Assembly (NCBI GenBank): GCA_904063045.1 | Contig: CAJFCJ010000003.1 | Span: forward strand, 62,001 to 126,000 | Length of the DNA: 64,000 bases | Direction of reading: 5' to 3' | Source of the DNA: Dimorphilus gyrociliatus | Taxonomy: Eukaryota; Animalia; Annelida | Shown: piece by piece, positions 824-46,905 of the stretch | How the letters are laid out: the number at the start of each line of letters is the position of its first letter | Numbering within the stretch: the first letter of the stretch is position 1 | Notes under the pieces: model-generated | Told to the model about the DNA's origin: nothing | The model's input: only the letters and a program-made list of their open reading frames with translations | Databases searched by the model: none | Made by a program: the position numbers and the translations under genes

Positions 824-2559
824 AAACATTCATCTTTTCTATGGCCAATTATATAATCTATCGTCAAGCCCAAATAATTTTACATAATTTCCTCTTCCAC
901 GTGAGAATTGTTGAACGATGGCATTAGCAGTAATTCTTCCAACCCATACAATAGTAGTTTGTTGAGAAGAGAAGAGAGATATTCCAAGAAAATGACTAAC
1001 TTTTCAATGGAACGGCATTTTGTTAAGTGAAACATCACGTCTTATTATATAAATGTTGATTAATTCACTTGAATTCAGTTGATAAATGCTAACCTTTGCT
1101 CTTCTACCATAATTTCAGTATCGTTTTGCTGTTCTTCTCGTTCCGTCATTGTAGTCAAATGTGGTAAAATGAATAATAAATTAGGGTGGATTGGAAACGT
1201 AAAATGTTAAATTTTTTTTCCCGAGTTCTGGTGTTGACTATAAAATGTTTTACCATGCGAAATAATCACGATTTTCATTTCCAAGTTGTCATTAACGGCT
1301 CATTAACACATACGAGAAAGTTAATTGCTACTGCAAAGATAGAGAGAAAAAGTTACGGTGTACGTTTCATAAGTTTTAAGACCAGTATCATTTTCACATA
1401 AGTTATATACACTTTATATACTTAGGTGCACAGGAGTTAAGACTAGATATACTACCAGTTGGTGTATCCCTTCCTGCATTGTTCTTTTCTTATTCGTACT
1501 AAAGGATGAAAGTAATAATTGAAATTATTTTGTATTTGAATGGCATATAGTGTAGCCTGGATAATCAAGGAATTACGCTATTATTACAAGTATTATTTAG
1601 TAAGATGGCCGTCGGTTAATCCTATCTTTCTAAAACATTTCCACCAAGAGAAGAGATGATAAATAGTTGACAATAGCTTTTGTTGAAATATATTTACTGT
1701 TATGAGTAGTCATTTGATTGGGTAGGTAAATTTCTGTGGATTGTTATGAAGAGAAGCTCAAGGAGAGAGGATTTTTGATTGATTAATTTTCATAGTCAAC
1801 CTACATTTGCATAACATTATAGTTTCATGGCCAACAGGAATAGTTCCTTGTTTTTCAATAGTGTATCAAGAAAATAAGAGAGAGGGGACACTGTAATATT
1901 GTTTGCATATTCTGCAACTTTATTCAAGATGACATATATAATATAATAATTGATGGGCGTGTGAACAGTTTTTGTTACAACGTTCGTAGGAAAGCCAAAA
2001 CGATTCCTTTCAAATATCCGGTAAATGTCTATCAGTATAGTTTGTCTTTGAATTAGTATTATCAGTAAAAATCAAATTTTGAAGCACCGAGTTGAAATGG
2101 AAACTTGTACGAAAGAAGATGGAAGAAGAGGTCGAATGGACAGAGAGAGAGAGAGAGAAGAACGACGCTCTACTAAAACCTTTTAAGAACGTTCAATATA
2201 CATTTTCAAATTGTCTCAATAAACATCTGTAAAGGGGCAACTAATTGGTATTTAATGCAAAAAAAGTAAAGGTAGCTAACTGAGTTTTGTAGAACTTGAA
2301 AATGTATCTGATTAAGAATTAAAATTGTATAAGCAAAAAGTAGCTTATTCAGTGTAATGAATCTGTTAAAAGTATGGATAATATCTTGCAAAGCGTTTTA
2401 AGAGATTATCACCTTTTTTTAGAAAATCGCTTAAAAGGGTTAATACATTTTTAATTGTTGACTTAAAAATGAATGCATAAAACAATTGAGCAATCTGAAC
2501 AGAGAGGGAAATTGAGGGACAAGGAGAGAGAGAAGGGAAGAAAGGAGATAGCGTTGAAA

Positions 2560-3627
2560 ATGATCAAGTTAACAGGATCATTAGTCTGTATGTTATATCT
2601 TCAAATAATGATTGCTAAAGTGGAGTTAACGGCAGATCGTAATTTTCACATTGCTGTCAATAATAAAGTTGGGACTATTCCAATGATACAAAAAATAACA
2701 CAAATAAATGTGAATATAGTAGAATCAAAATTTCCTTCGCAATATCTTTTAGAATATCACTCTGGAAATCTTAGATTGGACATGAATAGTTCAAGCTGTT
2801 TTACGCATCCAGTTCTCTGCTCTAATGGATTTTCAATATCTTTATGGTTATTTCTGCCTGACACGAATAACGAAGTTGTTATACTTGCGATGGAAACTTT
2901 GGAGTTTTCTTACAATCCAGTATCAAAGACAGTTTACGTGGTGGGTAATCTCTACCCTAATGTTAATGAATACTTTGTCGAAATGGAGGTGAAATACTTT
3001 GACGAGTGGCAATTCTGGAATATCGAATATAATCCATCTGACAGAGAGATTATTCTTAGGAGAAATCTGTTTGAGGAGAAGGTTTCCATCGTTAGGAACA
3101 AATCTCCGAAGGCACTTTACGGAAACATCATATCTATTGGTTTTCAATTCACAGGTAAAATGGACGATATATACTTTTGGAGTACGCGTCTGAGCATGGC
3201 TGATTTGATCGGGGTAAGAGATAGCGTTTTTCCCAGAGTGTCAAAGACCATAACAGAATGGAATTGTCTTTCTGACAAGTACGATAAGGCGTTTTTCGAT
3301 AATTCAATAGGGACATGTGAGACTGTTGGCAATGGTATAGTGAATATGTCGACTGGTTTTGTCGCCTCGCAATTCCGTGGTTTCGTCAGTTTTATAGATA
3401 AAAATGGAGGAAGCGAAAAAGTGAATTTCTATACTCAAATCAATCAAAACATTTACACATTATGCAAAAATATAACCCTAAATTCATATTTGAATCACAC
3501 TTTTCAATCCTTCAGTTGCGATTGTCCCGCAAAAAATTGCAGTGTATTGATGGAGACAAATAGTAACAACAACATTAATAGAAATAGTTTGCAAATATGT
3601 TCTGTAGTTTTTTACAGTTATGAATAA
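2560..3627 (+). CDS. Single-exon, probably secreted protein with a concanavalin A/LamG-like domain
   Basis: Long ORF (track 2473-3627). ATG at 2560 opens a hydrophobic signal-like stretch (MIKLTGSLVCMLYLQIMIA). SCFTHPVLCSNGFSISLWL and FTGKMDDIYFWSTRLS match LamG/pentraxin-like strand motifs. Confidence 0.6.
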   Translation: MIKLTGSLVCMLYLQIMIAKVELTADRNFHIAVNNKVGTIPMIQKITQINVNIVESKFPSQYLLEYHSGNLRLDMNSSSCFTHPVLCSNGFSISLWLFLPDTNNEVVILAMETLEFSYNPVSKTVYVVGNLYPNVNEYFVEMEVKYFDEWQFWNIEYNPSDREIILRRNLFEEKVSIVRNKSPKALYGNIISIGFQFTGKMDDIYFWSTRLSMADLIGVRDSVFPRVSKTITEWNCLSDKYDKAFFDNSIGTCETVGNGIVNMSTGFVASQFRGFVSFIDKNGGSEKVNFYTQINQNIYTLCKNITLNSYLNHTFQSFSCDCPAKNCSVLMETNSNNNINRNSLQICSVVFYSYE

Positions 3628-5499: not shown

Positions 5500-6400
5500 C
5501 CGAACTAATCTCCTATCGTTCTCGTCTAAAACAGTCGTATTGTAGAAGAGCCTTCCAGAATATTTCTCTCTTAGAAAAAGTACACCCAGTTTTTTTCCAT
5601 TGTCTTTGTTTTTTTCTCTCTAAATAAACTACACTTTAAAAAAGTCTAAATCATTTAATTCTAAATATTTCAACATATTTCCCTGAAATGTTGCAACTTG
5701 TTGAAAAAAATACAAACCATACTCAGCATACATAAATTTATGAGCGCCATACGCACACACATGACACATGTGTCGTTGGATGAGGGGTGAGGGATGAGAG
5801 AGAGAGAGAGAGGAAGGGAGGGAGAGAGAGAGATGGAGGGAGGGAGGAAGAGACAGAGAAGGAGAGAGAGATAAACAGATAGATAGATAGATAGACAGAC
5901 AGATAGATTGACAGACCGACGCGTAGATAATAATACAGAGGAGGAAGAGGAGGGCTGTTGTAAAATGTTTATTTAAATGAATGCGCAAGCATAGACTATA
6001 GATTGAAAAGATAAGGAAGTATTTTAATAATATAATTAATTAGAATGATAAGAGAGGAATGAAAAAGTTCTACATCTGTTGAAAATGATAAAAATTAAAA
6101 CGAACAAAGAGAATTAAAAAAAAATCAATGAAATAGTTTACTTATAAATAGATAATTGTTGTTTAGTTTACCCTTTGCAATTGGGAGACGTGTAAGCTAG
6201 CTTTATATTTCTTTGGCAAACAATCTTGTTTTTTAGGTTTAAAACTTATTATTGAATTCTGTTGGCAATTGTTTTGCTCTGCAAATATTTTCCATTTAAC
6301 AAACTAACGAAATAAACAAATAAATTAAGGTTTGTATTTTATTGTTTTCTAGTCGCCATCTTATTTGTTTCTATTAGTATTATTAATTCCTGAGTATAGG

Positions 6401-7752
6401 ATGTCGAACGACGAAGAAGTCTTATTCGATTTGGACCAGTATGAGGAAAAAGCGAAAGAGATGATTGAAGACAACTTCATTAGGAGATACATCTTTGAAG
6501 GGGCCGACTTCGACCAAGGAATTCGTAGGAATAGAGAAGCTCTTAAAGAGTATTTATTAAAATACAATACATTAATAACGTATAAATTATTATTGTTTCT
6601 CCAATTGAAAAGCATCCTTCTCTATCCGAGAGTATGCAGAGGTTTGGCCAAGAAAAGAGACCTGTCGACGAAAATTCTAGGGCACGAAATCTCTCTTCCC
6701 ATAGGCTTTTCGCCAACAATGTGCCGTTCGTGGATTCAACACGACGGAGAATTGGCAGCCGCCGAAGTTGCCATAGAAATGAATTTTCCATTTTGCCTAA
6801 GTTTCGTTGCCGAAACGCCTTTGGAAAGAGTGGCGAAATGCTACAAGCGGACGCCGAACTGCGTAAAATTTTTCGGTGTATCGCTCTACGACGAGGAGAG
6901 TCTTAGAGAAGTTGTCGACAGGGCTGAAAAGTGCAATTATCACGGTCTGGTGGTGACCGTCGATCATCCTTGCCACGGTAACAGGAGATTCGACAAGGAA
7001 GATCACGAAGAGTATAAACAATTCAGCAATATAACAATGCCCAATTTACCGAAAAAGATGCAGGAAGAGTTCAAAGACGAAAACGCCTCCTACGACCAAA
7101 GTCCACCGGAAACCTTTGAAGATTTGGCTATGTTAAAAAAAATGACCAAACTTCCAGTTATTGCTAAAGGTATCCTTAGACCAGAGGATGCCCTAGCTTG
7201 CGTTAAAGCTGGTATTGACGCAGTTTGGGTGTCGAATCACGGTGGTAGACAATTGGGCGATTGTCCCGCAACTGTAGAACTCTTGCAAGATATAGCTCCA
7301 GTTCTCAAGGGCTCTGGAGTCGAATTGTACATCGACGGAGGATTTCGACACGGCGCCGACGTGCTGAAGGCTCTGGCAATTGGTGCAAATTGCGTTTTCG
7401 TCGGTAGGCCAGTTTTAAGCGGATTGGCCGTTAATGTAAGTAAATTACATCATAAAGAGAAATTCTTATCATTCGCTTCTTTGCCAATCAAGAATTTCAT
7501 TCTTGTTGTAAATTATAATCATAATAATTATTATTATCAAACTTGATTCCACTTGCCTGATTAACTATTAATTTTTCTCTTTTTCTCTTTTTTCTCTCTT
7601 TCTTCCTTCCTTCCTTCCTGGAAATTCTTTAGGGAAAAGATGGAATTGAAGAGTCAATGAAACTAATGAGAAAAGAGTTGGATATAGCGATGGCATTGTG
7701 CGGATGTAACAGCATTTCAGATATAGATAGCAGCGTACTCTGGTCAAAGTAA
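6401..7752 (+). CDS. FMN-dependent alpha-hydroxy-acid oxidase (HAO/glycolate oxidase family), copy 1, 363 aa
   Basis: Exons 6401-6549, 6613-7435, 7633-7752 with GT..AG introns. Motifs VSNHGGRQL, TVD, IAKG, YIDGGFRHGADVLKALAIGA, VGRP. Ends VLWSK*. Confidence 0.93.
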
Positions 7753-8009
7753 TTGGTCTACACCAAGATCCTGATCAGTATCAATAAAAGGAGAAAACAA
7801 TTCTACATTGGTAGAAAATCAGAGAAAAAAGAACAAATTAGTCTATTCGTTCTAAAGCTTATAATAAAAAAACGTTAATGAAATAAATTCAATAGGCTTA
7901 TCGTTGGTTTCGTAGTTAGATATCTTTTCTTTCTTTGCGTATATTCATATTCATATTCAAACTCAGTCATGCATTGATTCGTTCGTTCAGTCGTTTATTC
8001 AATTATCCA

Positions 8010-8110
8010 TGCACCCATCCATGCATCCAACCGTCTATCCATCCATCCATCCATCCGTCCAACTGTCCGTCCATTCGTTCGTCCATCTATACATCTAACC
8101 TTCATCCAGT
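8010..8110. repeat. (CCAT)n-type degenerate microsatellite
   Basis: Tandem catc units. Produces the spurious HPSI ORF 7935-8201. Confidence 0.85.
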
Positions 8111-9152
8111 CATTCATCTAGTCATCAATCTATCCATACATTCGTCGAGGCAACCAGTGAATCGTTGGATTATTCAATTTTTTCCTTCTTTCTTCAAATA
8201 GGAGAAAAAGATATAAAAAAGGGGAGAAGCAAAAGGGAATGGATGGAGATTGACGGGAGAGGGATGATGGGAAGAAGAATTGCCTGTCTTTTTGAATCTA
8301 TGATTTTCAAGAGTTTGAATAAGGAATATATTGTTGTCTGTGTTGTGGGTAGTATGTAGTTTATTTGAAGATTTTATATAAAGCAAAAATATAGAATATA
8401 TGTAAGGGTTGTGTTAACGAGCTGATTACTGCATAAAGAGTGAATTATTGCTATTTTATTATTCGATTCAAAGGTAAAAGGTAACCTTTTAGTTTTAGAT
8501 TAGACAACTGAATTGAATGTGATTAATCGATTTATTTAATTCAATGTACTACTATGTTTTAGCATAGATGAAAATGATGTTTATTTCTACGAATTGACGG
8601 TTAAATTGGGGTTTGTTTTCAAGTTGTTTAATGTGATAGAACAACGGCGTCGTTTTGTTTATTTCGTGTATAAATGAAAGAAAAATAAAAGAGTCGAAAA
8701 GAGAGAATGTAAAGTCTATATGACGAAAAAGATGTAAAAATGTAGGATTGACGAGCTTGTTCAACAACAACAGATTGCTTTACGTATAGAATAATAATAA
8801 ATAATAAATTGCCGTGTAGTTAAAAAATATGATTATTAATCGAATTGAATTAGTGATGAAATAATTAATATAGTTAATGAACGATTGAACAAATGAATGA
8901 ATGAATGAATGATTCATTGATTTTTGCGCTTTACATTTCGAATGAAATGTAATTTAAAAATATATTCAGATTTTCCAATGTTATATTGAATTATATCATT
9001 TCTATTTTGGCTGTTTGTTTGCTTTATTTTTTATATTATTTTAATGGAGAATGGAGAATAATAGCAATAAAAAAAGAATATACTTGTTATTATTTTACTA
9101 GTGAAAATTGCGTTGGACTGTTTACTTCATCAATGATATCGTTCTACTAAAC

Positions 9153-10391
9153 ATGGATAGAATTATTATCAAGGGACAGTCTAATTTGAACGGTAGAATT
9201 AGCGTTGCCAAATCTAAAAGTTCTTCTCTCGCTCTTATGGCGGCTAGTGTACTTTCCAACGAACCGATAACTCTGATCAATCTACCTAGAATACATGATA
9301 TTTCGGTCATGAAGGGTCTGCTAGAAAGCGTTGGCGTCGTTATCGAAGAGCAGGGAGAATCAACAACCTTTAACGCCTCTAATCTCGTTACGAACGAAAT
9401 CTCAACTGACGCGACCTGGGCGTCTATTTATCTACTAGGTCCTCTGCTGGCCCGCACTGGAATTGTGAAAATTCACCGTCCCGGAGGTGGTGCGGTAGCT
9501 AATAGAGATGTTGATCTAACTTTAAACAATATGGAAAATATGGGCGCCAACGTTTACATGGAAAATGCTTACGTTAAAGCCACCGCCACCAGGATTGTTG
9601 GCAAGAATATTGCGCAACATTTTCCGTCGGTTGCCGCTACGTTTAACACAATCATAACCGCAATGATCGCCGACGGCAGGACTGTCTTGGAAAATGCGGC
9701 AAAGGATCCGGAAATAGTCGACCTGGTAGCCTTTTTAAACCTCATGGGAGGGGTAATTCAGGGATCGGGTATGGATAAAATTATCGTCGATGGAACGTCA
9801 ATAAAACAACTGAAAGGCGTCGAATACGAACCAATACCAGATTATATAGAGGCAACGGCGTTTATCGTTAGTGGACTGATTACTCAGTCGGAAATAACAA
9901 TAGACGAAATTGACCCTAGCCATTTGCTACCAATAACAAAGTTCCTGTTGAAAATTGGCGCAAAGTTTACAATAGGCACCGACTACATACGAACGTATAG
10001 GAAAAAGATATTTAGCGGTAATTTAGAGACGGCTCCCTATCCCGGCTTTCCATCCAACGCCCAACCCCTTCTCCTTGCACTCCTCACTCAGGCTCAGGGA
10101 AAGTCGATAATAACTGAGAATATAAACGAAAATAGATTTCACGTAGTAGCCGAAATGAGGCGGTTAGGCGCCGATATAGAATTGGAGGAGAAGAGAGCGT
10201 TGGTAAACAATTCCAAGTTGACAGGAGGAAAAGTCTATTGCGAGAATAGTATAGACGGTATGGCGTTAGTTTTAGCCTCGTTGGCGGTCAATGGAGAGAC
10301 GACTATCGAAAATGTAGAAATTTTGAAAAGAGGATTTCAAGATGTGATTGATAAATTTCAAGATTTAGGTGCCGATATAAGGATTGTTTAA
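9153..10391 (+). CDS. murA: Bacterial-type UDP-N-acetylglucosamine enolpyruvyl transferase (MurA) homologue, intronless, 412 aa, with substituted catalytic residues
   Basis: Collinear with MurA end to end: [58 protein letters not shown]-x2-ENRF, RLGADI, KRGF...LGADI. ATG at 9153 matches the MurA N-terminus; the track's TTG at 9108 is unlikely. Confidence 0.93.
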
Positions 10392-10429
10392 TGCGGTAAA
10401 GAGATTCCAATTGGATAGGAAGATAGATA

Positions 10430-10525
10430 GATGGATGGATGGATGGATGGATGGATGGATGGATGGATGGATGGATAGTTTGATTGACGGGTGAATGAAT
10501 GGGTAAATGGATGGATGGATGGATG
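10430..10525. repeat. (GGAT)n-type microsatellite just downstream of the murA stop
   Basis: Direct tandem gatg/ggat units. Confidence 0.9.
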
Positions 10526-10742
10526 AATGAATTCAGTATACGCAATCTTCTTTTGTCCATTTATTTGTTTATATTTAGAGTTTTTTTTCTTCTGTTTATT
10601 GAATGAAATAAAGTTGTTTGTAGATGACATGAATTGACACATTTTAAATAAAAATAAGAATAATAACAATAGTAAGATTCGCTATAATCAATACATAAAT
10701 AAAGAATAAATCATAATAATAACAAAATAAAATTCAAAGGGA

Positions 10743-13700
10743 CTATGCCATTACTGAATCTGTACTCTTCTTAACGAGTTCGTTGAATAGGCCGCCACTC
10801 GATATCAGTTGATCGGGAGTGCCTTTTTCTACGAGTTCACCTTTATCGATAACGAGAATCATATCGTAGTCCATTATTGTTTTAATACGGTGAGCAATAG
10901 TAATAATAGTACAATAATGAAAATGTTCCCTAATACAGTCCTGTATAAGGGTGTCAGTTTCATTATCTATATTTGCAGTTGCTTCGTCCAGAATTAGGAC
11001 ATTAGCCTTTCGAAGAAAGGCTCTCGCCAATGACAACATTTGCTTCTCTCCAACGCTAAAATTTCCTCCGTTATCTACAACTTTTGCGTAGATAGTATCT
11101 GGTAGTAATTTTATCTTTGGCGCCATTCCTACGCATTCGAGACTATTCCATATTTCCTGGTCAGAATAGATGCTATTCGGATCTATATTTGATCTTACAG
11201 TACCCGTAAACAAGTACATATCTTGGGGTATCGTTGATACTGAAGATCTGGCAATTGCTAGAGGTAAATTGAAGAGGTTAATACCGTCCAGGATGATTTC
11301 TCCTTCAGGTTCAACAAGTCTAAGAATGGCAGAAACGATTGTGGATTTTCCCGCTCCTGTTCGGCCGACAATGCCAACCTGATAAGAGTTGAGAGATGAA
11401 GTCAAAAGAAGGTAAGAAAGAAAGAAAGAATGAGAGTAAGAATGAACGAACGCACGAACGAACGAATGAATGATTGAGTAGAATTTGTATTTATCTCTAT
11501 TTATCCTCCTTACCTTTTTACCACTTTCTATTTCAAGAGAAAAGTTTTTCAAGGCGTAATCGTCAGTACCTTCGTATTTTAGACTGACATTTTTAAAGGT
11601 TAGCGAACCGTTTCTAGGCCACATCATATCTGTTGGAAGTTCTTTAAACTCTTTTTTCTCTTTATCCAATTCAGTATAGTCGATAACACGTTCGACCGAA
11701 GTAAACTAAAAGAAGAAAGAAGGAAAAACTTAGTTGGATGTTTCTAATTTGTCGGTTTTGTTTTTAATAGAAAACTAACCGCGTCTTCCATGCGGATAAA
11801 CGTTTGAAATATGGTCTGCAGAGGTTCAGACACATGAAGGATATATTGTATGACCAAACCTAGGAGCGTTACTGAGAGAGTAGTAAATCTCAACATGATT
11901 ATAGAAGTTGCCATTAGGATAAGGAAAACGATACTTGTTATCATTGTTCTCAGCCAGAAATAGGACGAATTCAACGCCAAAATCATACGATTATTCTCAT
12001 CCAACAACTCTGAATACTTTTCCCAGAATCTCTGTTGAACATCGTGGCATCTAATAACGGTTAGACCGTCGATAGTATCGCTGACGTGAGAGAGCACGGG
12101 ACTATGGCTGCTTGAGCTCAATCTCTTTAGGACAAAAATTGTTTTCGTTGCGAATTTGAATACTATAAATATGAGTATGATGCTTAGGGCAAAACTAATG
12201 CCAGACATAGGATAGACGTAGAGGGTAAACGAGACGCTAAAGCATAATTGCAGGACTAAATAGATGAAGGTGGCAAAAACCAAAAAGAGTACGTGATCTA
12301 CGGCCATAATATCTTTAGAGAATCGGTTGAGGATTACTCCTATTCTCTGAGAGTCGAAAAACATCATTTTAGCCCTAATGACCTCTTTAAGCATGTCGGC
12401 GTGAATCAGTATGGAGGCTCTCGTATTAAAGGCGGCAAATATAAATTCAACGCCTAAACTGGCCAAAGTTAGAAATCCTATTCCAGCAGCGTAGAATATT
12501 AATGCTTGCCGGTAGGCGGCATAATTTCCAAAGTTTAATTCAATAACCTCGGCGGTATTCTTATCAATTATTAATGTTATGAAGAGGACGACCAGAAGAA
12601 AGAGGACGCCCAGAAATAGAAGAAAGAGGGAGCCTTTTTTCATATAATACCAATGAACACCCCAATTAACGAATCCCTGGCCAGTCCTCTCCAAGTAGTC
12701 TTTCTTTTCTGTTGCATCATCGTGTTTACCTACTTTGTAAACTTCTTTTGATAATATCTGTAGTTGCTCATCTTCATCCTTGTCGACAGTATACTCCGAC
12801 ATTTCTCCATCACTAATTATTAATGATTTATCAACATTTTTCAAATACTGAGTTTGGTGCGTTACTAAAAGGACTGTCTTTGATTTAAGATAATCTTTTA
12901 TGGCAAATTGAAAGACGTGCTCTCCTATATTGGCGTCTAGAGCACTCAAAGGATCGTCTAAGAGGTATATATCCGATTCTCTATAGAGTGCTCTGGCCAG
13001 ACTTATTCTTGCCCTTTGACCTCCGCTTACTTTTAAACCTCTTTCGCCCACAATGGTTTGATCTTTAAGAGGAAATTTTCCAATATCTTCAATCAGTTTG
13101 CTAACTTCGTAGACTGTTTGCAACTTGACCAAATCCAATGGCTCTCCAAATATTACATTTTCTCTGATTGTATCACCAAATACCCATGGTTCTTGGGGCG
13201 AATAATTAAGCCTTCCCTTCCTTATTATCGAACCACTAAGGGTGTTTAATTCGCCCATAAGAACTTGAAGAAGCGTCGACTGTTGTTGCGAAATAGAAGA
13301 AAGAAGAAGGGAGGAAGAAGAGAGAAAAAAGAGCGTATTAAACAAACAGTAACGAAAAAATGGGATTTTTAAAAAACAAATATTAACCTTTCCACATCCA
13401 ATTGTACCTATAACGCAGTAGACTTGACCAGGTTTCATACTAAGGTTAATATTCTTTAGAATGGGAGTGTCAACGTTATCATCCCACGTGGCCGAAACGT
13501 CCTCCAACGCTATCGTTTGCTCGTTTTCGCTGGAATCATCCCTAACAATTTTATTCTCTCTATCGGGAAGTTTGAGAAATTCCTGCAAACAAAAAAACAG
13601 AGACGACGTTGGAGTTGTATGTTCTAATCTATAGATGATTGTCTATTTCTATACTAATCATTTAATGAATGAATGAACAAGTGCCGGTACATACCATAAT

Positions 13701-15209
13701 TCTTTCAAGGCTTTCGTACGCTTCGGCTATGTGGAACATAGCGGTTGCGAATGTATTAAATAGATGGTCTTCGAAAGTTCCCAGCATGAGTGATATATAT
13801 AAGAATTGAGCTACGTTCAAGTGCTCAATTTGTTTGAACCAGTACATGGATGCCAGAACTGCGAATAGGACGATATGCGGTGCAACAATACCCATAGCGT
13901 TTGGTATGGCTTCGATTATAAGCGATTTAAAATTAACTAATAGTTCTTTCCTCCTCTGTTCCTTTATTTTACCCTCAAAGTTACGTTCCCAGGCGTTCAT
14001 CTTAATCAGCTTTATGGCGGAACAAAGTTCCCTAACGCTATTTACCCTCTTATCGGAAAAGAAGGTGATCCATCCGTAATAACTTCCAGAGAGGTAACTT
14101 AAGATAGTTTGAATGAAAACGATGACGGCTAATGTGATTATCATGACGATTGTGACGTTGAAACCAATTTCCATAGATATTATAATAACTAATACAATAG
14201 ACATTACTGGTGAGGTTATGATAAACTGCAAAAATGATAGACAGTCCATAACTTGTTCCGTATCGCTCGTAATCAATGTTAGAATTCTACCGGAAGTAAC
14301 GTTATGTTTTGCAGTCTTGCTAACGGAGAGGAGCTATTAGATGGAAAATAGACGTTGGTTAATAGTTTTGTTTTTTTTTAAGAAGCTAATTATCTGTTCT
14401 TAGCATATCGGATTGAGTAGTAATAATAGTAATCATAGCAAAGATCGTACCAACCTTCTGATAGATGACGCCTCTTATGATGGTTTTAGCTCGAAGACCA
14501 CCAACAAGTTCAAGAAAATTACAATAAGTTATTAGAATATCGGCTAGTAGGTGTATTAAAAATATTCCAGAAAGTAGGCCATATTCTAAAGGAACAACCA
14601 TCGTATTCAAACTAAACTGGCGCAAAAGCTGGTAATATGAAATTGTACTAGCCAAGACGAGTAGGTCCTGTAAAATAGAATCAACGCAAACCAGTTAATC
14701 AGCTAATAGTTTTGGATTAAGGAATTTAGAGCTTACCGTCATGCTATTTAGGAAAACGGACCAGGCTAAATATTTGCAAACGAGCTTTCTAACGGCATTC
14801 ATTACAGTACCCATTCTCAGTTCTTTGTCCTTAATTTCTTCTCTGCGGGAAAATACTCTCGATTTAGAGGAGAAAAACAAAAAAACAAAGACAGAAACAA
14901 TCTTTAAATCGACTCACCGGTATTCTTCGTAAGCTGGAAGTGACTTTAGTTCTGGTAGCGTTTCAAATACAGTCTCTGGTACGAGTTCTTCCTTTGCACC
15001 TCTTCTTATAAACGAAGTCATCCACCTAGGAATTGTTCAAGTTTCTTAAATGATTGATTAATCGGTTCCCTTCCATATACAGTATATGGAAGGATCTAGC
15101 TATACAATTGTGAACGTTAATTCCCTTACCAGAAACATAGTCTCGAAAAAATGTTGGCCTTGACATAAGGGCACTCTTGGCTCTTTTCAATAAGTCTGGT
15201 GGTCTCCAT
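10743..15209 (-). CDS. ABCC4/MRP4-like ABC exporter, copy A, 1222 aa (TMD1-NBD1-TMD2-NBD2)
   Basis: Nine exons: 15209-15130, 15025-14918, 14842-14737, 14667-14455, 14333-13695, 13582-13388, 13279-11780, 11705-11514, 11378-10743; all junctions GT..AG and in phase. N-terminal CPYVKANIFSRLCFWW. NBD1 GTIGCGKS / VSGGQ / YLLDD; NBD2 GRTGAGKS / FSVGE / LILDE; ILNRFSKD. Confidence 0.92.
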
Positions 15210-16375: not shown

Positions 16376-19300
16376 TCAATAAATTTGCTGGTGTTGTTGA
16401 TTCTTCACAAGTTCGGCGAATATTCCTCCACTTTTAATCAATTCGATTGATGTTCCGCTTTCTACTAATCTGCCACACTCTATAACTAGAATAACGTCAT
16501 AGTCCATTATCGTGGCTAGCCTATGTGCTATGGTAATAACCGTACAGTTGGCAAAGTGTTTCCTTACGATATTTTGTATATGCTGATCAGTTTTGTTGTC
16601 GACGTTTGCGGTAGCTTCGTCCATAACTAGTACACAGCTTTTTTTAAGAAACGCCCTTGCTAAGGCCATTATTTGCTTTTCTCCCACGCTAAAATTGCTT
16701 CCACAGTCGGTAGTACGCGTATAGAGTTGATCAGTGTAGCTTTTTACCTTTGTCGCCATTCCAACTTTCTGCAGAGAATCCCAGATTTCTTGATCCGAGT
16801 GCATGTTGAATGGATCTAAATTGCTCCTAATTGTTCCGTTATAGATAAAGCTATCTTGAGGAATAATACTTATAGCACTTCTGGCCAGTTGAAGTGGAAT
16901 AAGTAGTAAATTGACATTGTCTATGTAAATTTCACCACTAGGTTCGTGAAGCCTAAGCAGAGCCGAAACAATCGAGCTCTTTCCCGCTCCTGTCCTTCCC
17001 ACAATGCCAACCTATAAATCAACCATTTATTCAGTTAGTCAGGGCAAGTCAACTCATCGAACGTTACATAAAGACAAACTGACAAGCAAACAACTACAAA
17101 CCTTTTGACCACTATCACATTTAAAATTTAAATTTTTCAACGCGTACTCCTCGCAATCAGTATACCGTAAGCATACATTCTTAAAATGAATAGATCCCGT
17201 TCGAGGCCAGTACTCGTCGTCCGGCATTAGACTGAAATTTTCCTTTTCGCCCTCTATATGCATATAATCAAGAATCCTTTCGACCGATGCGAACTGCAAG
17301 TGGCCAAGTATAAGAAAAAGAAGAAGAGGTAAAAAACGAATTACTAACCGCGTCTTCCATCTCTATAAATTTTTGAAAGAGAACTTGAAGAGGCTTCGAT
17401 ATGCCTAATATATACTGAACCACTAAACCTAATAAGGTAACCGACAAGTTCGTTGTCCTTAGCATGATCATAGTGAATACAAGAATCATTAGAAGGGTAA
17501 AAGTTGAACTAATACTTCTTAACCAAAAATAAGAGGAGAAGAGAGCCATATCTATTCTATTGTTTTCGTCGGTGAGCTTTTTCAACTTTTCCCAAAATCT
17601 CTCAGTCATATTATGACACCTGATCACTGATATTCCTGTCAGAGTATCATTGATATGCGATAATAGTGGCGCACTACTCGACAGTTCCAACCTTTTTAAT
17701 CTAAATATAGGATTGGACGCCTTTCTGAAGAGTATATAATTAACTACTATACAAATAACATAGCAAATAGCCAAATAGGGATAGACGTAAGTGGTGAATG
17801 CCATTCCAAAGAAGACGTGGAGAAGCAAAGTGATAAAAGTGCTAAACGCTACAATCATCACTTGATCGACGAATAAGAGATCTTTAGAGAATCTATTAAG
17901 GATGACGGCAACCCTATGAGTGTCAAAAAATGTCATTTTAGCCTTCATAACTTTAACAAGCATTTCGTTGTGAATGTTCTTGGATGATTTGATGGTAAAA
18001 ACCAATAGGAACAATTCGGAGGAGAAGGCAACCAACGTGGCAAAAGATACTGTGACCACAAAAAACAATAGAGCTTGTCTAAAGCTTTTCACGTTGCCGT
18101 AATGTATTTCAATAGCATTCGACATGTTTAACTCTCCTAATAAATTCAAAAGAAACGATGCTACGAATAGTGCAAATGCGATGAAAATCATCAATGGCGA
18201 TCCTTTTTTTATATAGAACCAATGTACTTTCCAGTTGGCGGTACCCTCTCCTGTTCCTTCAAAGTAGGATTCGCCCTCTTCCAACGAGTCTTCCACTTCA
18301 AATTGTTGACTTTCAACTCTGTCCGTATTGGGTAAACTTTGAATTTGTTGAATTTCGTCGTAATTTTCAACACGGCCGTTGTTCAAAGTGAGCACTTTAT
18401 CCACTTCTTTCAAAATATTTTGTTGATGAGTGACGAGCAAGACTGACTTTGATTTGAGATATACTTTTAGCGCCTTTTCAAAAACTAGTCTACTAATTTT
18501 GGCGTCTAAAGCGCTGAAAGGATCGTCTATTAGATATACGTCGGCGTCCCTGTAGAGGCATCTGGCCAAGCTTATTCGTGACCTTTGCCCCCCGCTTAGC
18601 TTGAGGCCTTTTTCCCCGACAACAGTTTGATCTTGTAGAGGCATAGTTTCGAAATCTTGTACAAGACCCGAAGCTTCGTATACTTTGTTTAATTTGTTCA
18701 AATCGAAATTCTCTCCAAACACAACATTTTCTCTAATTGTATCGTGAAATATCCACGGTTCTTGAGGTGAAAAGCTCAATTTTCCGTTGACAATCATTTT
18801 ACCACTCCTTATCCTTTCCTCTCCCAAAACGACTTGAAGTAGAGTCGACTGTTTGTGGTTATTGGTACGTTGTCGTTTTTGAAAAAGACAAAAATTGAAA
18901 GGACACATTATTTTTAATGAATAAAAGAGAGAGTAAGAACCTTTCCACTTCCAATAACGCCAACGATGCCTAGTAGTTCCCCTCTCGACAATTCAAAGTA
19001 AACGTCTTTGAGCATTTTATCTGTTTGTTTCTCATCCCACGAAGTACAAATTTCTTGAGCTTTAACCAGTGTTAAATTAACCTTTTCGTCTATACAACAA
19101 ACGACGTCGTTTGGTTTGTCGTTTCCCATTAAGAATTTCTATTGAAAAGGAATAGTTTTATTTTCTTTAAATGTTTAATTCTGTTAGAAACAAAAGTTTA
19201 GATATTATTTTGATATTCTTCAAGTCTAGCTTGTCCTATTCTGTCAAATTTTATGTTTGTTTGTTTATTTATTTCATATTGGATAGTATACTAACGCTGA

Positions 19301-41357: not shown

Positions 41358-42700
41358 ATGGCGAGTGAAAAAGTACCATTTTCCCTCGATGACATTGAGA
41401 AAGCAGCCAAGAAAAAAATGGAAAAGGATGTGGCTGATTATATTTATGGAGGTGCCGATCAACATCAAGGAGTCGTTAGAAATCAAAAAGTCATGAAAGA
41501 GTAAGATAATCATTTATTCTCTCTTTCCTATCTGATCCAGACTTTTTTGAGATATTGTTCCCCTCTCTCTCCTTCTCTTCCTCTTTATTACTTGCTATTG
41601 TATGTTTTATTCCTCTACACCTAGAATACTTCTAAATCCAAAAGTATGCGCTAATCTTTCTACCAGAGATTTATCAACGACCATCTTAGGCTATAAAATA
41701 TCAATGCCCATAGGCTTTTCACCCACTGGCTGCCGTGAGTGGGTGATAGATGACGGAGAAACCTATGCGGCAAAGTCGGCCGCTTCCTGGAATATACCAT
41801 TTAGCCTGAGTTCATTTACTGAGATACCTTTGGAAATGGTTAATGAAAGTATGAAAGAGTTTGGCGATCCCCTAAGAATAATGCAAATGAGTGTTTATCC
41901 AGAAGAAGCGATGACAAAGGAGATCATTAAGAGGGTGGAAAAATGCGGCTTTCAAGCTATTGTATTAACTCTTGATCATCCGGTGCACGGAAGGAGAAGC
42001 TTTGACGGTTCGGAAGGTGACGATCCATGGGAGGAAACTGGTCTACCTAATCTACCCGAAAAGCTATTGCTCGATTATGAAAAGTCAATAAGAGACGGTA
42101 CTTTGGAGGAAATCGAAACCAGCACCGAAAGTTGGCAGGATATTACGAAGATTAAAAGAATGACCAAATTGAAAGTAATAGCTAAAGGTATTGCCCGTCC
42201 AAACGACGCCTTGGAGGCTATAAAAGCAGGAGCCGACGCTATTTGGATATCGAATCACGGAGGAAGGCAATTGGGTGATGGTCCCGCCACAATCGATTGC
42301 CTTCGGCGAATAGCTCCAGTTGTCAAGCAGTTTGGGGTTGAAATATACATTGACGGAGGCTTCAGGAGCGGAAACGATGTATTAAAGGCTTTGGCTTTGG
42401 GTGCGAGGTGCATTTTTATTGGTAGGCCTGTTCTCAGTGCTCTGGCAGTCAAGGTGAGAAAGAGATATGTATATACTGTATTATATGTATCTACATATAT
42501 ACAGTTATATTTTATAATATCTATTGTATTATATGTAAAAGTAAAGGCTGGTTTTTCTTTTCTTCAAAACCAAAAAAAAACAGGGAGAAGAGGGGGTGAG
42601 TGATATGCTAAAGATTATGAAGAGGGAATTGGATATCTCAATGGCTCTCTGCGGCTGCAGGAATATCGAAGAAGTAAGCGAATCGATTCTTTGGACTTGA
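41358..42700 (+). CDS. FMN-dependent alpha-hydroxy-acid oxidase, copy 2, 362 aa
   Basis: Exons 41358-41500, 41625-42453, 42584-42700, same intron positions as copy 1. ISNHGGRQL, YIDGGFRSG, IGRP. Ends ILWT*. Confidence 0.93.
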
Positions 42701-45639: not shown

Positions 45640-46905
45640 ATGGAAGAAACTCAATCATGCTTCTGCTTGGAAGAAATGGAGAAGATCGGACGTGAAAAAA
45701 TGGACAAGTCCGTTGCTAAATACATCTACGGCGGAGCTGATCAACACCAAGCCGTATCAAGAAATAGAGAGGCGATAAAAGAGTAAGTTTTAAAGTTTTC
45801 ACTTTTTTTCAAATACAATCTCTCCTATGATGGTAAAACGTATCTATAATTTCCGTTCTACCCTTGTAAAATAGGATTCTCTTGGCACCAAAAGTCTGCG
45901 CCGGTATCTCAAAGAGAGATCTCTCAACTACCATCCTCGGACAGAAAGTCGACATGCCTATCGGATTCTCTCCCACAATGTGCAGAGCCTGGATCACTGA
46001 CGAAGGTGAAATCTACGCAGCCATTGCCGCCGGCGAAGCTAACATCCCATTTGGCTTCAGTTCATTCACCGAAACATCTATCGAAGACGTTGGCGAATCG
46101 ATGGCTGATTTTGAAAATCCTTTGAAAATTATGCAAATGAGCATTTATCCTGAAAAGGAGATGACAATGGAAATTATCAAAAGAATTAAGAAAGCCGGAT
46201 TCCAAGCTATTGCTGTTACCGTTGATCATCCAGTTCACGGAAGAAGAGACTTTGACGGCGGTGACGACGAAGAACCAGAAATCTGGCAAGAAACTGGCCT
46301 ACCCAATTTCCCAAAAAAACTTCTCTACTTGCATGAAAAGGAAAAGAACAATAAAGACCCCGACGAGATTGAAACCACTCACGAAACTTGGCAGCAAATC
46401 ACTGATTTGAAAGAATGGAGCGGCTTAAAAGTCGTCGTCAAGGGTATTGCCCGACCAGAAGACGCCGAAGCAGCAATAAAGGCTGGAGCCGATGCTATAT
46501 GGGTATCAAATCACGGTGGTAGACAATTAGGAGATGGCCCAGCTACAATTGATTGCCTTAGAAAAATTGCACCAGTTGTGAAGAAGGCAGGAGTTGACTT
46601 GTACATCGACGGAGGATTCAGAACAGGATCCGATGTCCTTAAAGCTTTAGCTTTGGGAGCGAATGCCGTATTCATTGGAAGACCAGTTTTGAGCGCTATA
46701 GCTTATAACGTGAGTAAAAACAACAATTATTAGCTTTTCGTCCGTTTATCGGTTGCTTAACCAAACTTTTTTACAATTGAAACAATAGGGTTACGAGGGA
46801 GTAAAAGAAATGCTCGGTATCTTAAGAAAGGAATTAGACATTTCAATGGCTCTTTGCGGATGCAGTAAACTCTCAGACATCGACCAATCGATTCTATGGG
46901 AGTAA
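45640..46905 (+). CDS. FMN-dependent alpha-hydroxy-acid oxidase, copy 3, 364 aa
   Basis: Exons 45640-45782, 45875-46709, 46789-46905. VSNHGGRQL, YIDGGFRTG, IGRP. Ends ILWE*. Confidence 0.93.

Follow-up and report, generated by a model that had tools for sequence, protein, structure and literature searches.

A bacterial murA gene in the nuclear genome of the annelid Dimorphilus gyrociliatus and its probable conversion into a non-catalytic protein

Reports of bacterial genes in animal genomes mostly concern working enzymes that give the host an additional metabolic capability. Among the described systems closest to the gene reported here are the bacterial cell-wall genes of the mealybug Planococcus citri (PMC6838666) and of aphids (PMC9116674), which reside and are expressed in the animal nucleus. 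The main text of the mealybug peptidoglycan paper (PMC6838666) does not refer to murA. A second point of reference is provided by MurA proteins without the catalytic cysteine. The fosfomycin-resistant Cys-to-Asp MurAs of Chlamydia and Mycobacterium have, like the worm protein described below, no cysteine at position 115; Asp115 preserves catalysis, and these natural variants keep all other active-site residues (PMC4062475). A literature search for MurA combined with pseudoenzyme, or with horizontal transfer in animals, yielded no relevant title, and no published report of the D. gyrociliatus murA gene was found.

D. gyrociliatus is a miniature marine worm. The window analysed comprises 64,000 nucleotides of its genome (positions 62,001 to 126,000 of contig CAJFCJ010000003.1), and all coordinates given below refer to it. 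Bacterial residues are numbered according to E. coli MurA.

The murA locus and its transcript

The murA-like coding sequence (9153..10391, plus strand) extends from an ATG at 9153 to a stop codon at 10389–10391 and consists of 412 codons plus stop, with neither an intron nor an internal stop codon. It is enclosed in a longer open reading frame with a TTG start (9108..10391), and a gene of 412 residues is already called here in the public record (GCA_904063045.1, contig CAJFCJ010000003.1). This 3.23-Mb contig of D. gyrociliatus carries animal genes on either side of murA. Upstream on the same strand lies the spliced HAO gene (DgyrCDS1984; 6401..8881), the coding sequence of which ends near 7752 and the mRNA of which continues to about 8881. 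HAO matches FMN_dh; its RNA contigs contain the GT..AG joints 6327/6398 and 6549/6613 and also skip 7436–7632 between exon blocks. Downstream, an ABCC-type ABC transporter gene encoding 1227 residues is located on the minus strand (10743..15209), convergent with murA, and beyond it a second ABCC copy begins at 16376 on the same strand. No other bacterial-type gene was found near murA.

A discrete, unspliced murA transcript of about 1.37 kb was recovered from two RNA runs of separate studies, X2 (2017) and X3 (2020), in which HAO was represented by spliced contigs. The murA contigs start at 9084 (X2) and 9093 (X3), which delimits a 5' untranslated region of 9084..9152, and reach 10411, from where they continue for 44–48 nt into the microsatellite within the 3' region (10392..10612). 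The X2 and X3 contigs leave 8882–9083, between the HAO mRNA and the murA transcript, without RNA coverage, and murA is thus a separate transcription unit. The depth of the murA RNA contig amounts to approximately one-ninth of that of HAO. In run X6 (2024), which bears the same species label, neither murA nor HAO was present. The 5' untranslated region contains an upstream open reading frame of five codons (ATG at 9133, TAA at 9150) that ends 2 nt upstream of the main ATG, which itself lies in a Kozak-like context (aaacATGg); a Shine-Dalgarno motif was not found upstream of it. The first AATAAA 3' of the stop codon is at 10607–10612. Bacterial signals around murA are not enriched, with 10 sigma-70 promoter-like sites against an expected 7.3 ± 2.5 and one terminator-like site against an expected 1.4.

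The physical link between murA and the animal genes was examined in short-read assemblies. A single 6092-nt contig of DNA run X1 is collinear with 6300–10411 and joins the intron-bearing HAO gene to murA. The short-read contigs break at the microsatellite, a (GATG)27 array, equivalent to (GGAT)n, at 10422–10529, so the junction with ABCC is not bridged by short-read contigs and is supported by the public long-read assembly. Of the two junctions that the sequence-only reading had proposed to check, the HAO side is spanned by independent DNA. Codon usage of murA resembles that of the host (RSCU correlation r = 0.78 with host genes, in contrast to 0.31 with donor-like murA), and its GC3 of 0.43 is close to the 0.47 of the host gene. 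A bacterial murA gene is integrated in the nuclear genome of D. gyrociliatus and is transcribed there. The sequence-only reading had proposed an integrated and retained bacterial gene, complete, intronless and free of stops, between a spliced HAO gene and an ABCC gene, with a GGAT array after the stop codon and no bacterial gene context. This description is borne out by the family matches of the 412-residue product, the two ABCC-type genes on the minus strand, the array that begins 31 nt past the stop codon, the HAO linkage and transcript, the host-like codons, and the phylogeny, orthologue and purifying selection described in the following.

Family, origin and orthologue

The protein matches the Pfam family EPSP_synthase (PF00275; 8e-67) over profile positions 2–416 of 417. 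It passes the NCBIfam MurA subfamily model NF006873 (390 bits, cutoff 297), just misses the equivalog TIGR01072 (383.3 against a cutoff of 392.7) and misses NF009470 (329.9 against 552). E. coli MurA (PDB 1UAE) and other bacterial MurAs have the same length as the worm protein and align with it end to end from Met1 with 33–44% identity. The AlphaFold model has a pLDDT of 89.3 and superimposes on E. coli MurA (1uae) in Foldseek with a TM score of 0.95 and an rmsd of 2.1; the predicted structure thereby shows the two-domain, inside-out α/β-barrel fold of MurA to be kept. Only two segments of the model are of low confidence or disordered, and these are the two former catalytic loops, one of them residues 112–116. 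NikO (4FQD) and AroA (EPSP synthase) share the superfamily fold (TM 0.86–0.90), but their sequence match to the worm protein is far weaker (95 bits, and 68 bits with the AroA model, compared with 278–390 bits for MurA). Judged by these matches, the protein is a derived MurA and falls outside the NikO and AroA families. It is probably cytosolic, since it has no N-terminal extension.

An orthologue, P0002, which is 57.5% identical, was identified in 1.4-kb genomic contigs of SRR23372228/9, from a related species; the orthologue for which the sequence-only reading had suggested a search thus exists. The run that contains P0002 also contains an orthologue of HAO with 86% identity and shared intron positions. 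In this second species, murA and HAO lie on contigs without overlap, and the non-coding sequence around them cannot be aligned; the GC3 values of murA and the host gene are 0.288 and 0.282, respectively. The presence of the orthologue implies that the transfer is older than the split of the two species. A word-indexed search with both proteins, an exhaustive profile search and the ESM Atlas revealed no third orthologue, and in these sequence searches no animal other than the two worms had a MurA orthologue.

All relatives except P0002 are bacterial MurAs; the nearest are of the Bdellovibrionota type, and the best match is 44% identical, far from the near-identity expected of a contaminant. When 1.84 billion representatives were scanned exhaustively, the cluster of the worm protein itself scored 831 bits and the next match 317 bits. 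The two animal proteins group together with a support of 100/100 on a stem of 1.45–1.66 substitutions per site, and this very long branch, the nuclear location and a eukaryotic transcript of its own are among the features that set the worm copy apart from bacterial MurAs. The pair falls within a 21-row bipartition with Bdellovibrionota-type MurAs (support 99/91), and its maximum-likelihood placement is beside them (73/79). In the AU test, a Gamma/Beta-proteobacterial sister group obtained p = 0.021 and a Bacillota sister group, with p = 0.059, was not firmly rejected. The trees hint at a donor of a Bdellovibrionota (Bacteriovoracia/Oligoflexia)-type lineage.

Active-site residues and constraint

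Residue conservation was surveyed in 118 bacterial MurAs, among which 70 columns are conserved to at least 97%, and the roles of the residues were taken from PMC4062475. The D. gyrociliatus protein keeps 54 of the 70 columns and has lost 16; P0002 has lost 23, and 14 of the losses are common to both. Bacterial sequences have lost a mean of 0.58 and a maximum of 6 of these columns. All ten of the residues that were checked are present in the nearest bacterial relatives, and two more distant matches differ at one or three of them. Seven replacements are the same in both worm proteins: R91W, E188D, R232Y, T304S, D305N, R371I and Y399F.

The losses include the catalytic center. What remains of the catalytic loop is a stretch of 10 residues (9480..9509) in which Gly113 takes the place of Cys115 and Arg118, the equivalent of Arg120, is kept. 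Position 115 is occupied by Cys in 117 of the bacterial proteins and by Asp in one; P0002 has Ser, and its loop contains a 3-residue insertion. Ser301-Asn302 (10053..10058) replaces the invariant Thr304-Asp305, in the orthologue as well. Asp305 is Asp in all 118 bacterial proteins and Asn in both animal proteins; it participates in the final deprotonation and in the product release steps (PMC4062475). Arg91, likewise Arg in 118 of 118 bacteria, is Trp89 in D. gyrociliatus (codon 9417..9419) and Trp in P0002. Asn365-Ser366-Ile367 (10245..10253) stands for Asp369-Leu370-Arg371, of which Leu370 and Arg371 are invariant, and the invariant Asn23 and Gly164 have become Ser and Ala. Gly118 and Phe328, also invariant in bacterial MurAs, are replaced in the D. 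gyrociliatus protein too. The phosphate-binding residues Lys22, Arg120 and Arg397 are kept in D. gyrociliatus, as are Arg331 and the segments R120–L124 and S162–V163. P0002 has Arg, Asn and Arg at these three phosphate-binding positions (K22R and R120N) and also carries R331K. Unlike the natural Cys-to-Asp MurAs, the worm proteins thus carry Gly or Ser and have lost many more invariant residues. Synthesis of enolpyruvyl-UDP-GlcNAc has most likely been lost, and since catalytic and invariant residues are gone, the protein most likely does not feed into peptidoglycan synthesis. Binding of PEP or of a UDP-sugar, and even residual or altered chemistry, would be possible for the D. gyrociliatus protein because K22, R120, R331 and R397 and the two segments are kept.

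Comparison of the two coding sequences shows that purifying selection acts on murA in both lineages. Identity is 78% at second codon positions and 41% at third positions; four-fold sites are at random identity (0.29), dS is saturated (NG86 = -1), and omega can therefore only be bounded. Both open reading frames are intact, every indel that separates the two copies preserves the frame, and in neutral simulations, which were of the substitution-only type, the frame was still open in none of 5000 runs. The dN of the murA pair (0.30) is three times that of the neighboring HAO (0.10), which indicates a weaker constraint than on an ordinary enzyme. The tip lengths of the orthologues are 0.18 and 0.75, and of six outgroups used in Tajima tests only two gave a significant result; P0002 may evolve faster than the D. 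gyrociliatus copy. A further peculiarity is found in residues 241–300 (9873..10052), a β-α-β-α-β-β unit of the C-terminal domain. In sliding windows the worm pair is 77–83% identical there; bacteria are variable (top-residue fraction 0.50–0.62), and the worm sequence agrees with the bacterial consensus at only 30–37%. This conservation seems to reflect a constraint peculiar to the animal lineage.

Function and comparison with known systems

We consider it probable that murA is a domesticated gene: transferred, integrated in the host, transcribed, constrained and most likely non-catalytic. According to this model, a bacterial murA entered the nuclear DNA of an ancestor that D. gyrociliatus shares with one or more related species. 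It is now a host gene between HAO and ABCC, with host codon usage and a separate, unspliced mRNA that starts at about 9084. Along the long branch after the transfer, the two-domain fold was kept, and the catalytic Cys115 was replaced by Gly and Asp305 by Asn. Purifying selection has retained the gene in both lineages, with a bacterially variable stretch now strongly conserved. The product most likely works as a pseudoenzyme, a shell that binds a ligand or a protein; a non-catalytic role is proposed because the catalytic residues are lost and yet purifying selection and a newly conserved stretch are found. It is quite unlikely that this shell is a cytosolic receptor for a bacterial or central metabolite such as UDP-MurNAc, UDP-GlcNAc or PEP, or a protein-binding module that acts via residues 241–300, and that it links the sensing of bacteria to host physiology. 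Bacteria are the food of D. gyrociliatus, a biofilm grazer. If either version is correct, the protein would be an animal innate-sensing or regulatory factor derived from a cell-wall enzyme that was gained by horizontal transfer. MurA (UDP-N-acetylglucosamine 1-carboxyvinyltransferase, EC 2.5.1.7), which transfers the enolpyruvyl group of PEP to UDP-GlcNAc, is the first enzyme of peptidoglycan synthesis. To our knowledge, this pathway is absent from animals, and the worm protein therefore cannot regulate an active paralogue of the host.

An alternative is a new enzyme: the MurA scaffold would carry out another reaction or accept another substrate as acceptor, and the catalytic work would fall to other residues. 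In favor of it, the superfamily members AroA and NikO work without the cysteine, the phosphate-binding triad is intact in D. gyrociliatus, and after a burst of changes on the stem the protein came under constraint and gained a newly conserved segment. We nevertheless regard it as unlikely, because K22R, R120N and R331K in P0002 mean that no common active site is conserved, both former catalytic loops are the sole disordered parts of the model, and the conserved 241–300 segment is a whole folding unit distant from these loops. Less probable still is a transcribed relic without function that has decayed slowly since the transfer. The loss of catalytic residues, the threefold higher dN, the low RNA depth and the additional conserved residues missing from the second copy would suit such a relic; they are outweighed by open reading frames that have stayed intact, with in-frame indels, beyond the saturation of synonymous sites, by the neutral simulations and the difference between second and third codon positions, and by the near-invariant structural columns and the confidently predicted fold.

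It is very improbable that the protein is an active MurA that supplies enolpyruvyl-UDP-GlcNAc, for example for symbiont peptidoglycan in a mosaic pathway of the mealybug type, the analogy that the sequence-only reading had drawn. The full-length fold, the expression of the gene, the retained K22, R120 and R397, and the existence of natural Cys-less MurAs (Asp in one of the 118 bacterial proteins and in the chlamydial enzyme, PMC4062475) are in its favor. However, Cys115 has become Gly and not Asp, both species have substitutions at Asp305 and at several positions that bind substrate, the invariant Arg91, Arg371, Leu370, Asn23 and Gly164 are replaced in the D. gyrociliatus protein, the orthologue has dispensed with K22, R120 and R331 and carries an insertion in the catalytic loop, and the protein does not reach the equivalog cutoff for MurA. 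In the main text of the D. gyrociliatus genome paper, horizontal transfer occurs in one cited title only and is not discussed. Bacterial contamination or a chimeric assembly, which an intronless gene of a bacterial family and the unbridged downstream junction might suggest, is rejected on account of the X1 contig that ties murA to the intron-bearing HAO, a bacterial identity of at most 44% among 5.8 billion clusters searched, host-like codons and host-type microsatellite flanks, an orthologue that matches the composition of its own host, and bacterial promoter and terminator signals that are not in excess.

The worm murA could be the first described MurA pseudoenzyme, and it would illustrate cleanly, in nature, how a transferred gene can be retained for a purpose unrelated to the reaction it once catalysed. 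Its retention, intact, host-adapted and transcribed, spans a speciation old enough for synonymous saturation. D. gyrociliatus is an annelid that can be cultured in the laboratory and has a 74-Mb genome, which makes direct testing feasible. The mealybug and aphid genes are described as working enzymes of a host-symbiont mosaic pathway, whereas the worm murA is devoid of catalytic residues; a mur gene in an animal is not by itself evidence for peptidoglycan made by the host. With pseudoenzymes in general the worm protein shares an intact fold, the absence of key catalytic residues, constraint and expression, and it differs from other pseudoenzymes in that it originates from a horizontally transferred bacterial enzyme.

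The murA gene and its neighbours

The murA gene of Dimorphilus gyrociliatus extends on the plus strand from an ATG at 9153 to a stop codon at 10389-10391 (412 codons) and is enclosed by a longer TTG-started ORF from 9108. An identical protein is encoded, as an existing public gene call, on CAJFCJ010000003.1 (3,232,594 bp) of the D. gyrociliatus assembly GCA_904063045.1 (PMC10212961). The protein aligns end to end with Pfam EPSP_synthase (8e-67) and scores 390 bits with the NCBIfam MurA subfamily model (cutoff 297) and 383.3 with the 'equivalog' (same-function) model TIGR01072, slightly below the cutoff of 392.7. Solved MurA structures cover residues 1-412; Clostridioides difficile MurA reaches 278 bits, in contrast to only 95 bits for NikO. 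Upstream of murA lies HAO, a spliced gene for an FMN-dependent hydroxyacid oxidase (6401-7752; DgyrCDS1984 [Dimorphilus gyrociliatus] in NCBI and UniRef), and farther upstream a RING-finger gene. Downstream, two tandem ABCC-type ABC transporter genes on the minus strand (10743-15209 and 16376 onward; 1227 and at least 1225 aa) converge with murA. The ORF, its family matches and its neighbours thus bear out the sequence-only reading of a full-length MurA-like gene between HAO and ABCC genes.

Microsatellites of three related tetranucleotides, (ATCC)n, (AATG)n and (GATG)n, lie on both sides of murA at 8005-8061, 8876-8912 and 10422-10529. The last, (GATG)27, begins 31 nt past the stop codon, so that the gene does lie among host-type repeats as had been proposed. 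These microsatellites explain spurious 'HPSIHPSI' ORFs and the breaks in all short-read assemblies. Sites resembling bacterial promoters or terminators were not in excess around murA. The introns observed, of 63-70 nt, are consistent with the 66-bp median of the 73.8-Mb D. gyrociliatus genome (PMC7854359).

HAO belongs to a cluster of three FMN_dh paralogues in the window (6401-7752, 41602-42603 and 45882-46733), which correspond to DgyrCDS1984 and probably 1988 and 1989; murA and the two ABCC genes lie between the first copy and the next. A fourth HAO-like gene, DgyrCDS2183, is located elsewhere on CAJFCJ010000003.1, and the paralogues are 51-55% identical to one another. A 384-aa ORF without a Pfam match occupies 2473-3627 (+), where the public record has a 331-aa gene (about 2473-3563).

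An orthologue in a related worm and the origin of murA

In a search of 5.8 billion protein clusters, P0002 (56-58% identity), the murA product of a second, related worm species, was the best match apart from the protein itself; the remaining matches were bacterial MurAs of at most 44% identity. The gene is not a contaminant and has no near-identical bacterial counterpart in these clusters, and the database and orthologue searches suggested with the sequence-only reading yielded an end-to-end MurA family match, a single animal relative and otherwise bacterial MurAs. When 1.84 billion representatives were scanned exhaustively by HMMER with a profile of both worm proteins, the self cluster scored 831 bits and the next protein 317 bits. 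A search seeded with P0002 revealed no further family member. P0002 is encoded on 1.4-kb contigs of SRR23372228/9, and both runs yield identical coding sequences. The HAO orthologue in P0002's run is 86% identical to D. gyrociliatus HAO and retains introns at shared positions, which identifies the run as genomic DNA of a related species. The sequence upstream of P0002 contains a T-run with (CAATTTT)n and that downstream (GTTT)n; these flanks have 20-22% GC.

The composition of each copy resembles that of its own host. GC3 is 0.43 for murA versus 0.47 for HAO in D. gyrociliatus and 0.288 versus 0.282 in the second species. Relative synonymous codon usage of D. gyrociliatus murA correlates with that of five host coding segments at r = 0.78, versus 0.31 with donor-like murA genes; any one host segment compared with the others reaches 0.44-0.66, below the value for murA. 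Because an orthologue exists in a related species and each copy matches its host, the transfer is an old one that took place before these two species diverged.

The best matches in species-representative bacterial genomes were MAGs of Oligoflexia, Bacteriovoracaceae and Bacteriovoracia (37-41% identity), and P0002's own match list independently contains proteins named Bdellovibrionota and Halobacteriovoraceae. Maximum-likelihood trees, also among the proposed checks, place the animal pair among bacterial MurAs as a monophyletic group (100/100) on a long stem of 1.45-1.66 substitutions per site, adjoining Bdellovibrionota-type MurAs (73/79) within a 21-row bipartition (99/91). In AU tests, a Bacillota sister was not firmly rejected (p = 0.059) and a Gamma/Beta-proteobacterial sister was marginally rejected (p = 0.021). 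From these comparisons the donor would, at a best guess, be Bdellovibrionota-like.

Loss of catalytic residues and relocated constraint

According to the literature, the residues that interact with MurA ligands are Lys22, Cys115, Asp305, Arg120, Asp369 and Leu370 (PMC4062475). Both worm proteins were aligned with 118 bacterial MurAs, numbered according to E. coli K-12 MurA (genome record). The following residues are invariant in the bacteria (D. gyrociliatus/P0002 in brackets): Lys22 (Lys/Arg), Asn23 (Ser/Asn), Arg91 (Trp/Trp), Gly118 (Ala/Ser), Arg120 (Arg/Asn), Gly164 (Ala/Thr), Thr304 (Ser/Ser), Asp305 (Asn/Asn), Arg331 (Arg/Lys), Leu370 (Ser/Pro), Arg371 (Ile/Ile) and Arg397 (Arg/Arg). Cys115 (117 Cys, 1 Asp) is replaced by Gly in D. 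gyrociliatus and by Ser with a 3-residue loop insertion in P0002, and Phe328, present in 116/118 bacteria, by Asn and Lys, respectively. At the 70 columns conserved to at least 97% in bacteria, 16 residues are lost in the D. gyrociliatus protein and 23 in P0002; a bacterial sequence loses 0.58 on average and 6 at most. Fourteen columns are lost in both worms, and in seven of these the new residue is the same (R91W, E188D, R232Y, T304S, D305N, R371I and Y399F). The nearest bacterial relatives retain all ten residues checked, which assigns the losses to the animal stem; two more distant matches deviate, P0125 at one and P0131 at three of the ten.

The MurA fold is untouched in the AlphaFold model of the D. 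gyrociliatus protein (pLDDT 89.3, pTM 0.89), which superposes on E. coli MurA with a TM of 0.95; its confidence is low only in the two former catalytic loops, at residues 112-116 and 296-298. Since Met1 aligns with the bacterial N-terminus, neither a signal peptide nor a transit peptide is present, and the protein is probably cytosolic. In the best-supported reading, based on these sequence comparisons, the product of an old murA transfer would have lost catalysis and persisted as a pseudoenzyme, a non-catalytic protein in which a new surface is constrained. The main rival is an altered enzyme on the MurA scaffold; arguing against it is the finding that the cleft residues which one species retains have been lost from the other.

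A neutral relic is unlikely given the pattern of divergence. The two worm proteins share 57.5% of their amino acids, all gaps between them are in frame, and codon positions 1, 2 and 3 are 68%, 78% and 41% identical. Four-fold sites are 29% identical, as at random, and dN is 0.30; for HAO between the same species synonymous sites are equally saturated and dN is 0.10. The rate of change in murA is thus about three times that of an ordinary host enzyme, yet far below the neutral rate, and in substitution-only neutral simulations at the observed divergence or half of it the ORF stayed open in 0/5000 runs. Residues 241-300, one beta-alpha-beta-alpha-beta-beta unit of the C-terminal domain, are variable in bacteria but 77-83% identical between the worms, and agreement of the worm sequence with the bacterial consensus in this stretch is only 30-37%; judged from these identities, constraint has moved to this segment. 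Evolution may be faster on the P0002 branch than on that of D. gyrociliatus (tree tips 0.75 versus 0.18), with relative-rate tests significant for only 2/6 outgroups.

Integration, transcription and comparison with known systems

An assembly artefact is unlikely: among public-run contigs mapped to 6300-12200, one 6092-nt contig of the DNA run X1 is collinear with the window from intron-containing HAO through the intergenic region to 10411, in the murA 3' region, and stops at the microsatellite beyond. Of the two junctions to be checked, that between HAO and murA is thereby spanned, whereas for that between murA and ABCC, which no short-read contig bridges, the evidence is the long-read assembly. 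In the RNA runs X2 (from a 2017 study, labelled as another organism) and X3 (a 2020 study), the HAO contigs lack 6328-6397 and 6550-6612, each with GT..AG borders, lack 7436-7632 as well, and end at about 8881. Separate unspliced contigs extend from 9084 to 10411 plus 44 nt in X2 and from 9093 to 10411 plus 48 nt in X3, and neither run covers 8882-9083, so that murA forms its own transcription unit. Its contig depth, an unreliable guide to expression, is roughly 1/9 that of HAO. The context of the main ATG is strong and Kozak-like (aaacATGg); a five-codon upstream ORF (MISFY, 9133-9150) in the 5' UTR, with a weak ATG context and ending 2 nt before the main ATG, could affect translation.

In the HAO mRNA the 3' UTR is about 1.1 kb long (7753-8881) and ends about 200 nt ahead of the murA transcript start, in agreement with descriptions of the D. 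gyrociliatus genome as having long UTRs and short intergenic regions. The 2024 run X6, of the same species label, contained neither murA nor HAO, only short low-complexity matches; it may represent another lineage, another library type or a mislabelled sample.

The reading of murA as an integrated and retained bacterial gene is supported. Full-text searches on MurA or enolpyruvyl transferase and horizontal transfer in annelids or animals, on Dimorphilus and horizontal transfer, and on MurA pseudoenzymes yielded no report of the worm gene, and the D. gyrociliatus genome paper leaves horizontal transfer undiscussed beyond one cited title (PMC7854359). The parallel drawn earlier with the peptidoglycan genes of mealybugs is not supported, since residues needed for the MurA reaction are missing from the worm protein; the main text of the mealybug peptidoglycan paper does not contain murA. 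The gene model was already public and horizontal gene transfer into animals is known as a class; what is new is a transferred animal gene that, on the pseudoenzyme reading, would have been retained after the loss of catalysis.
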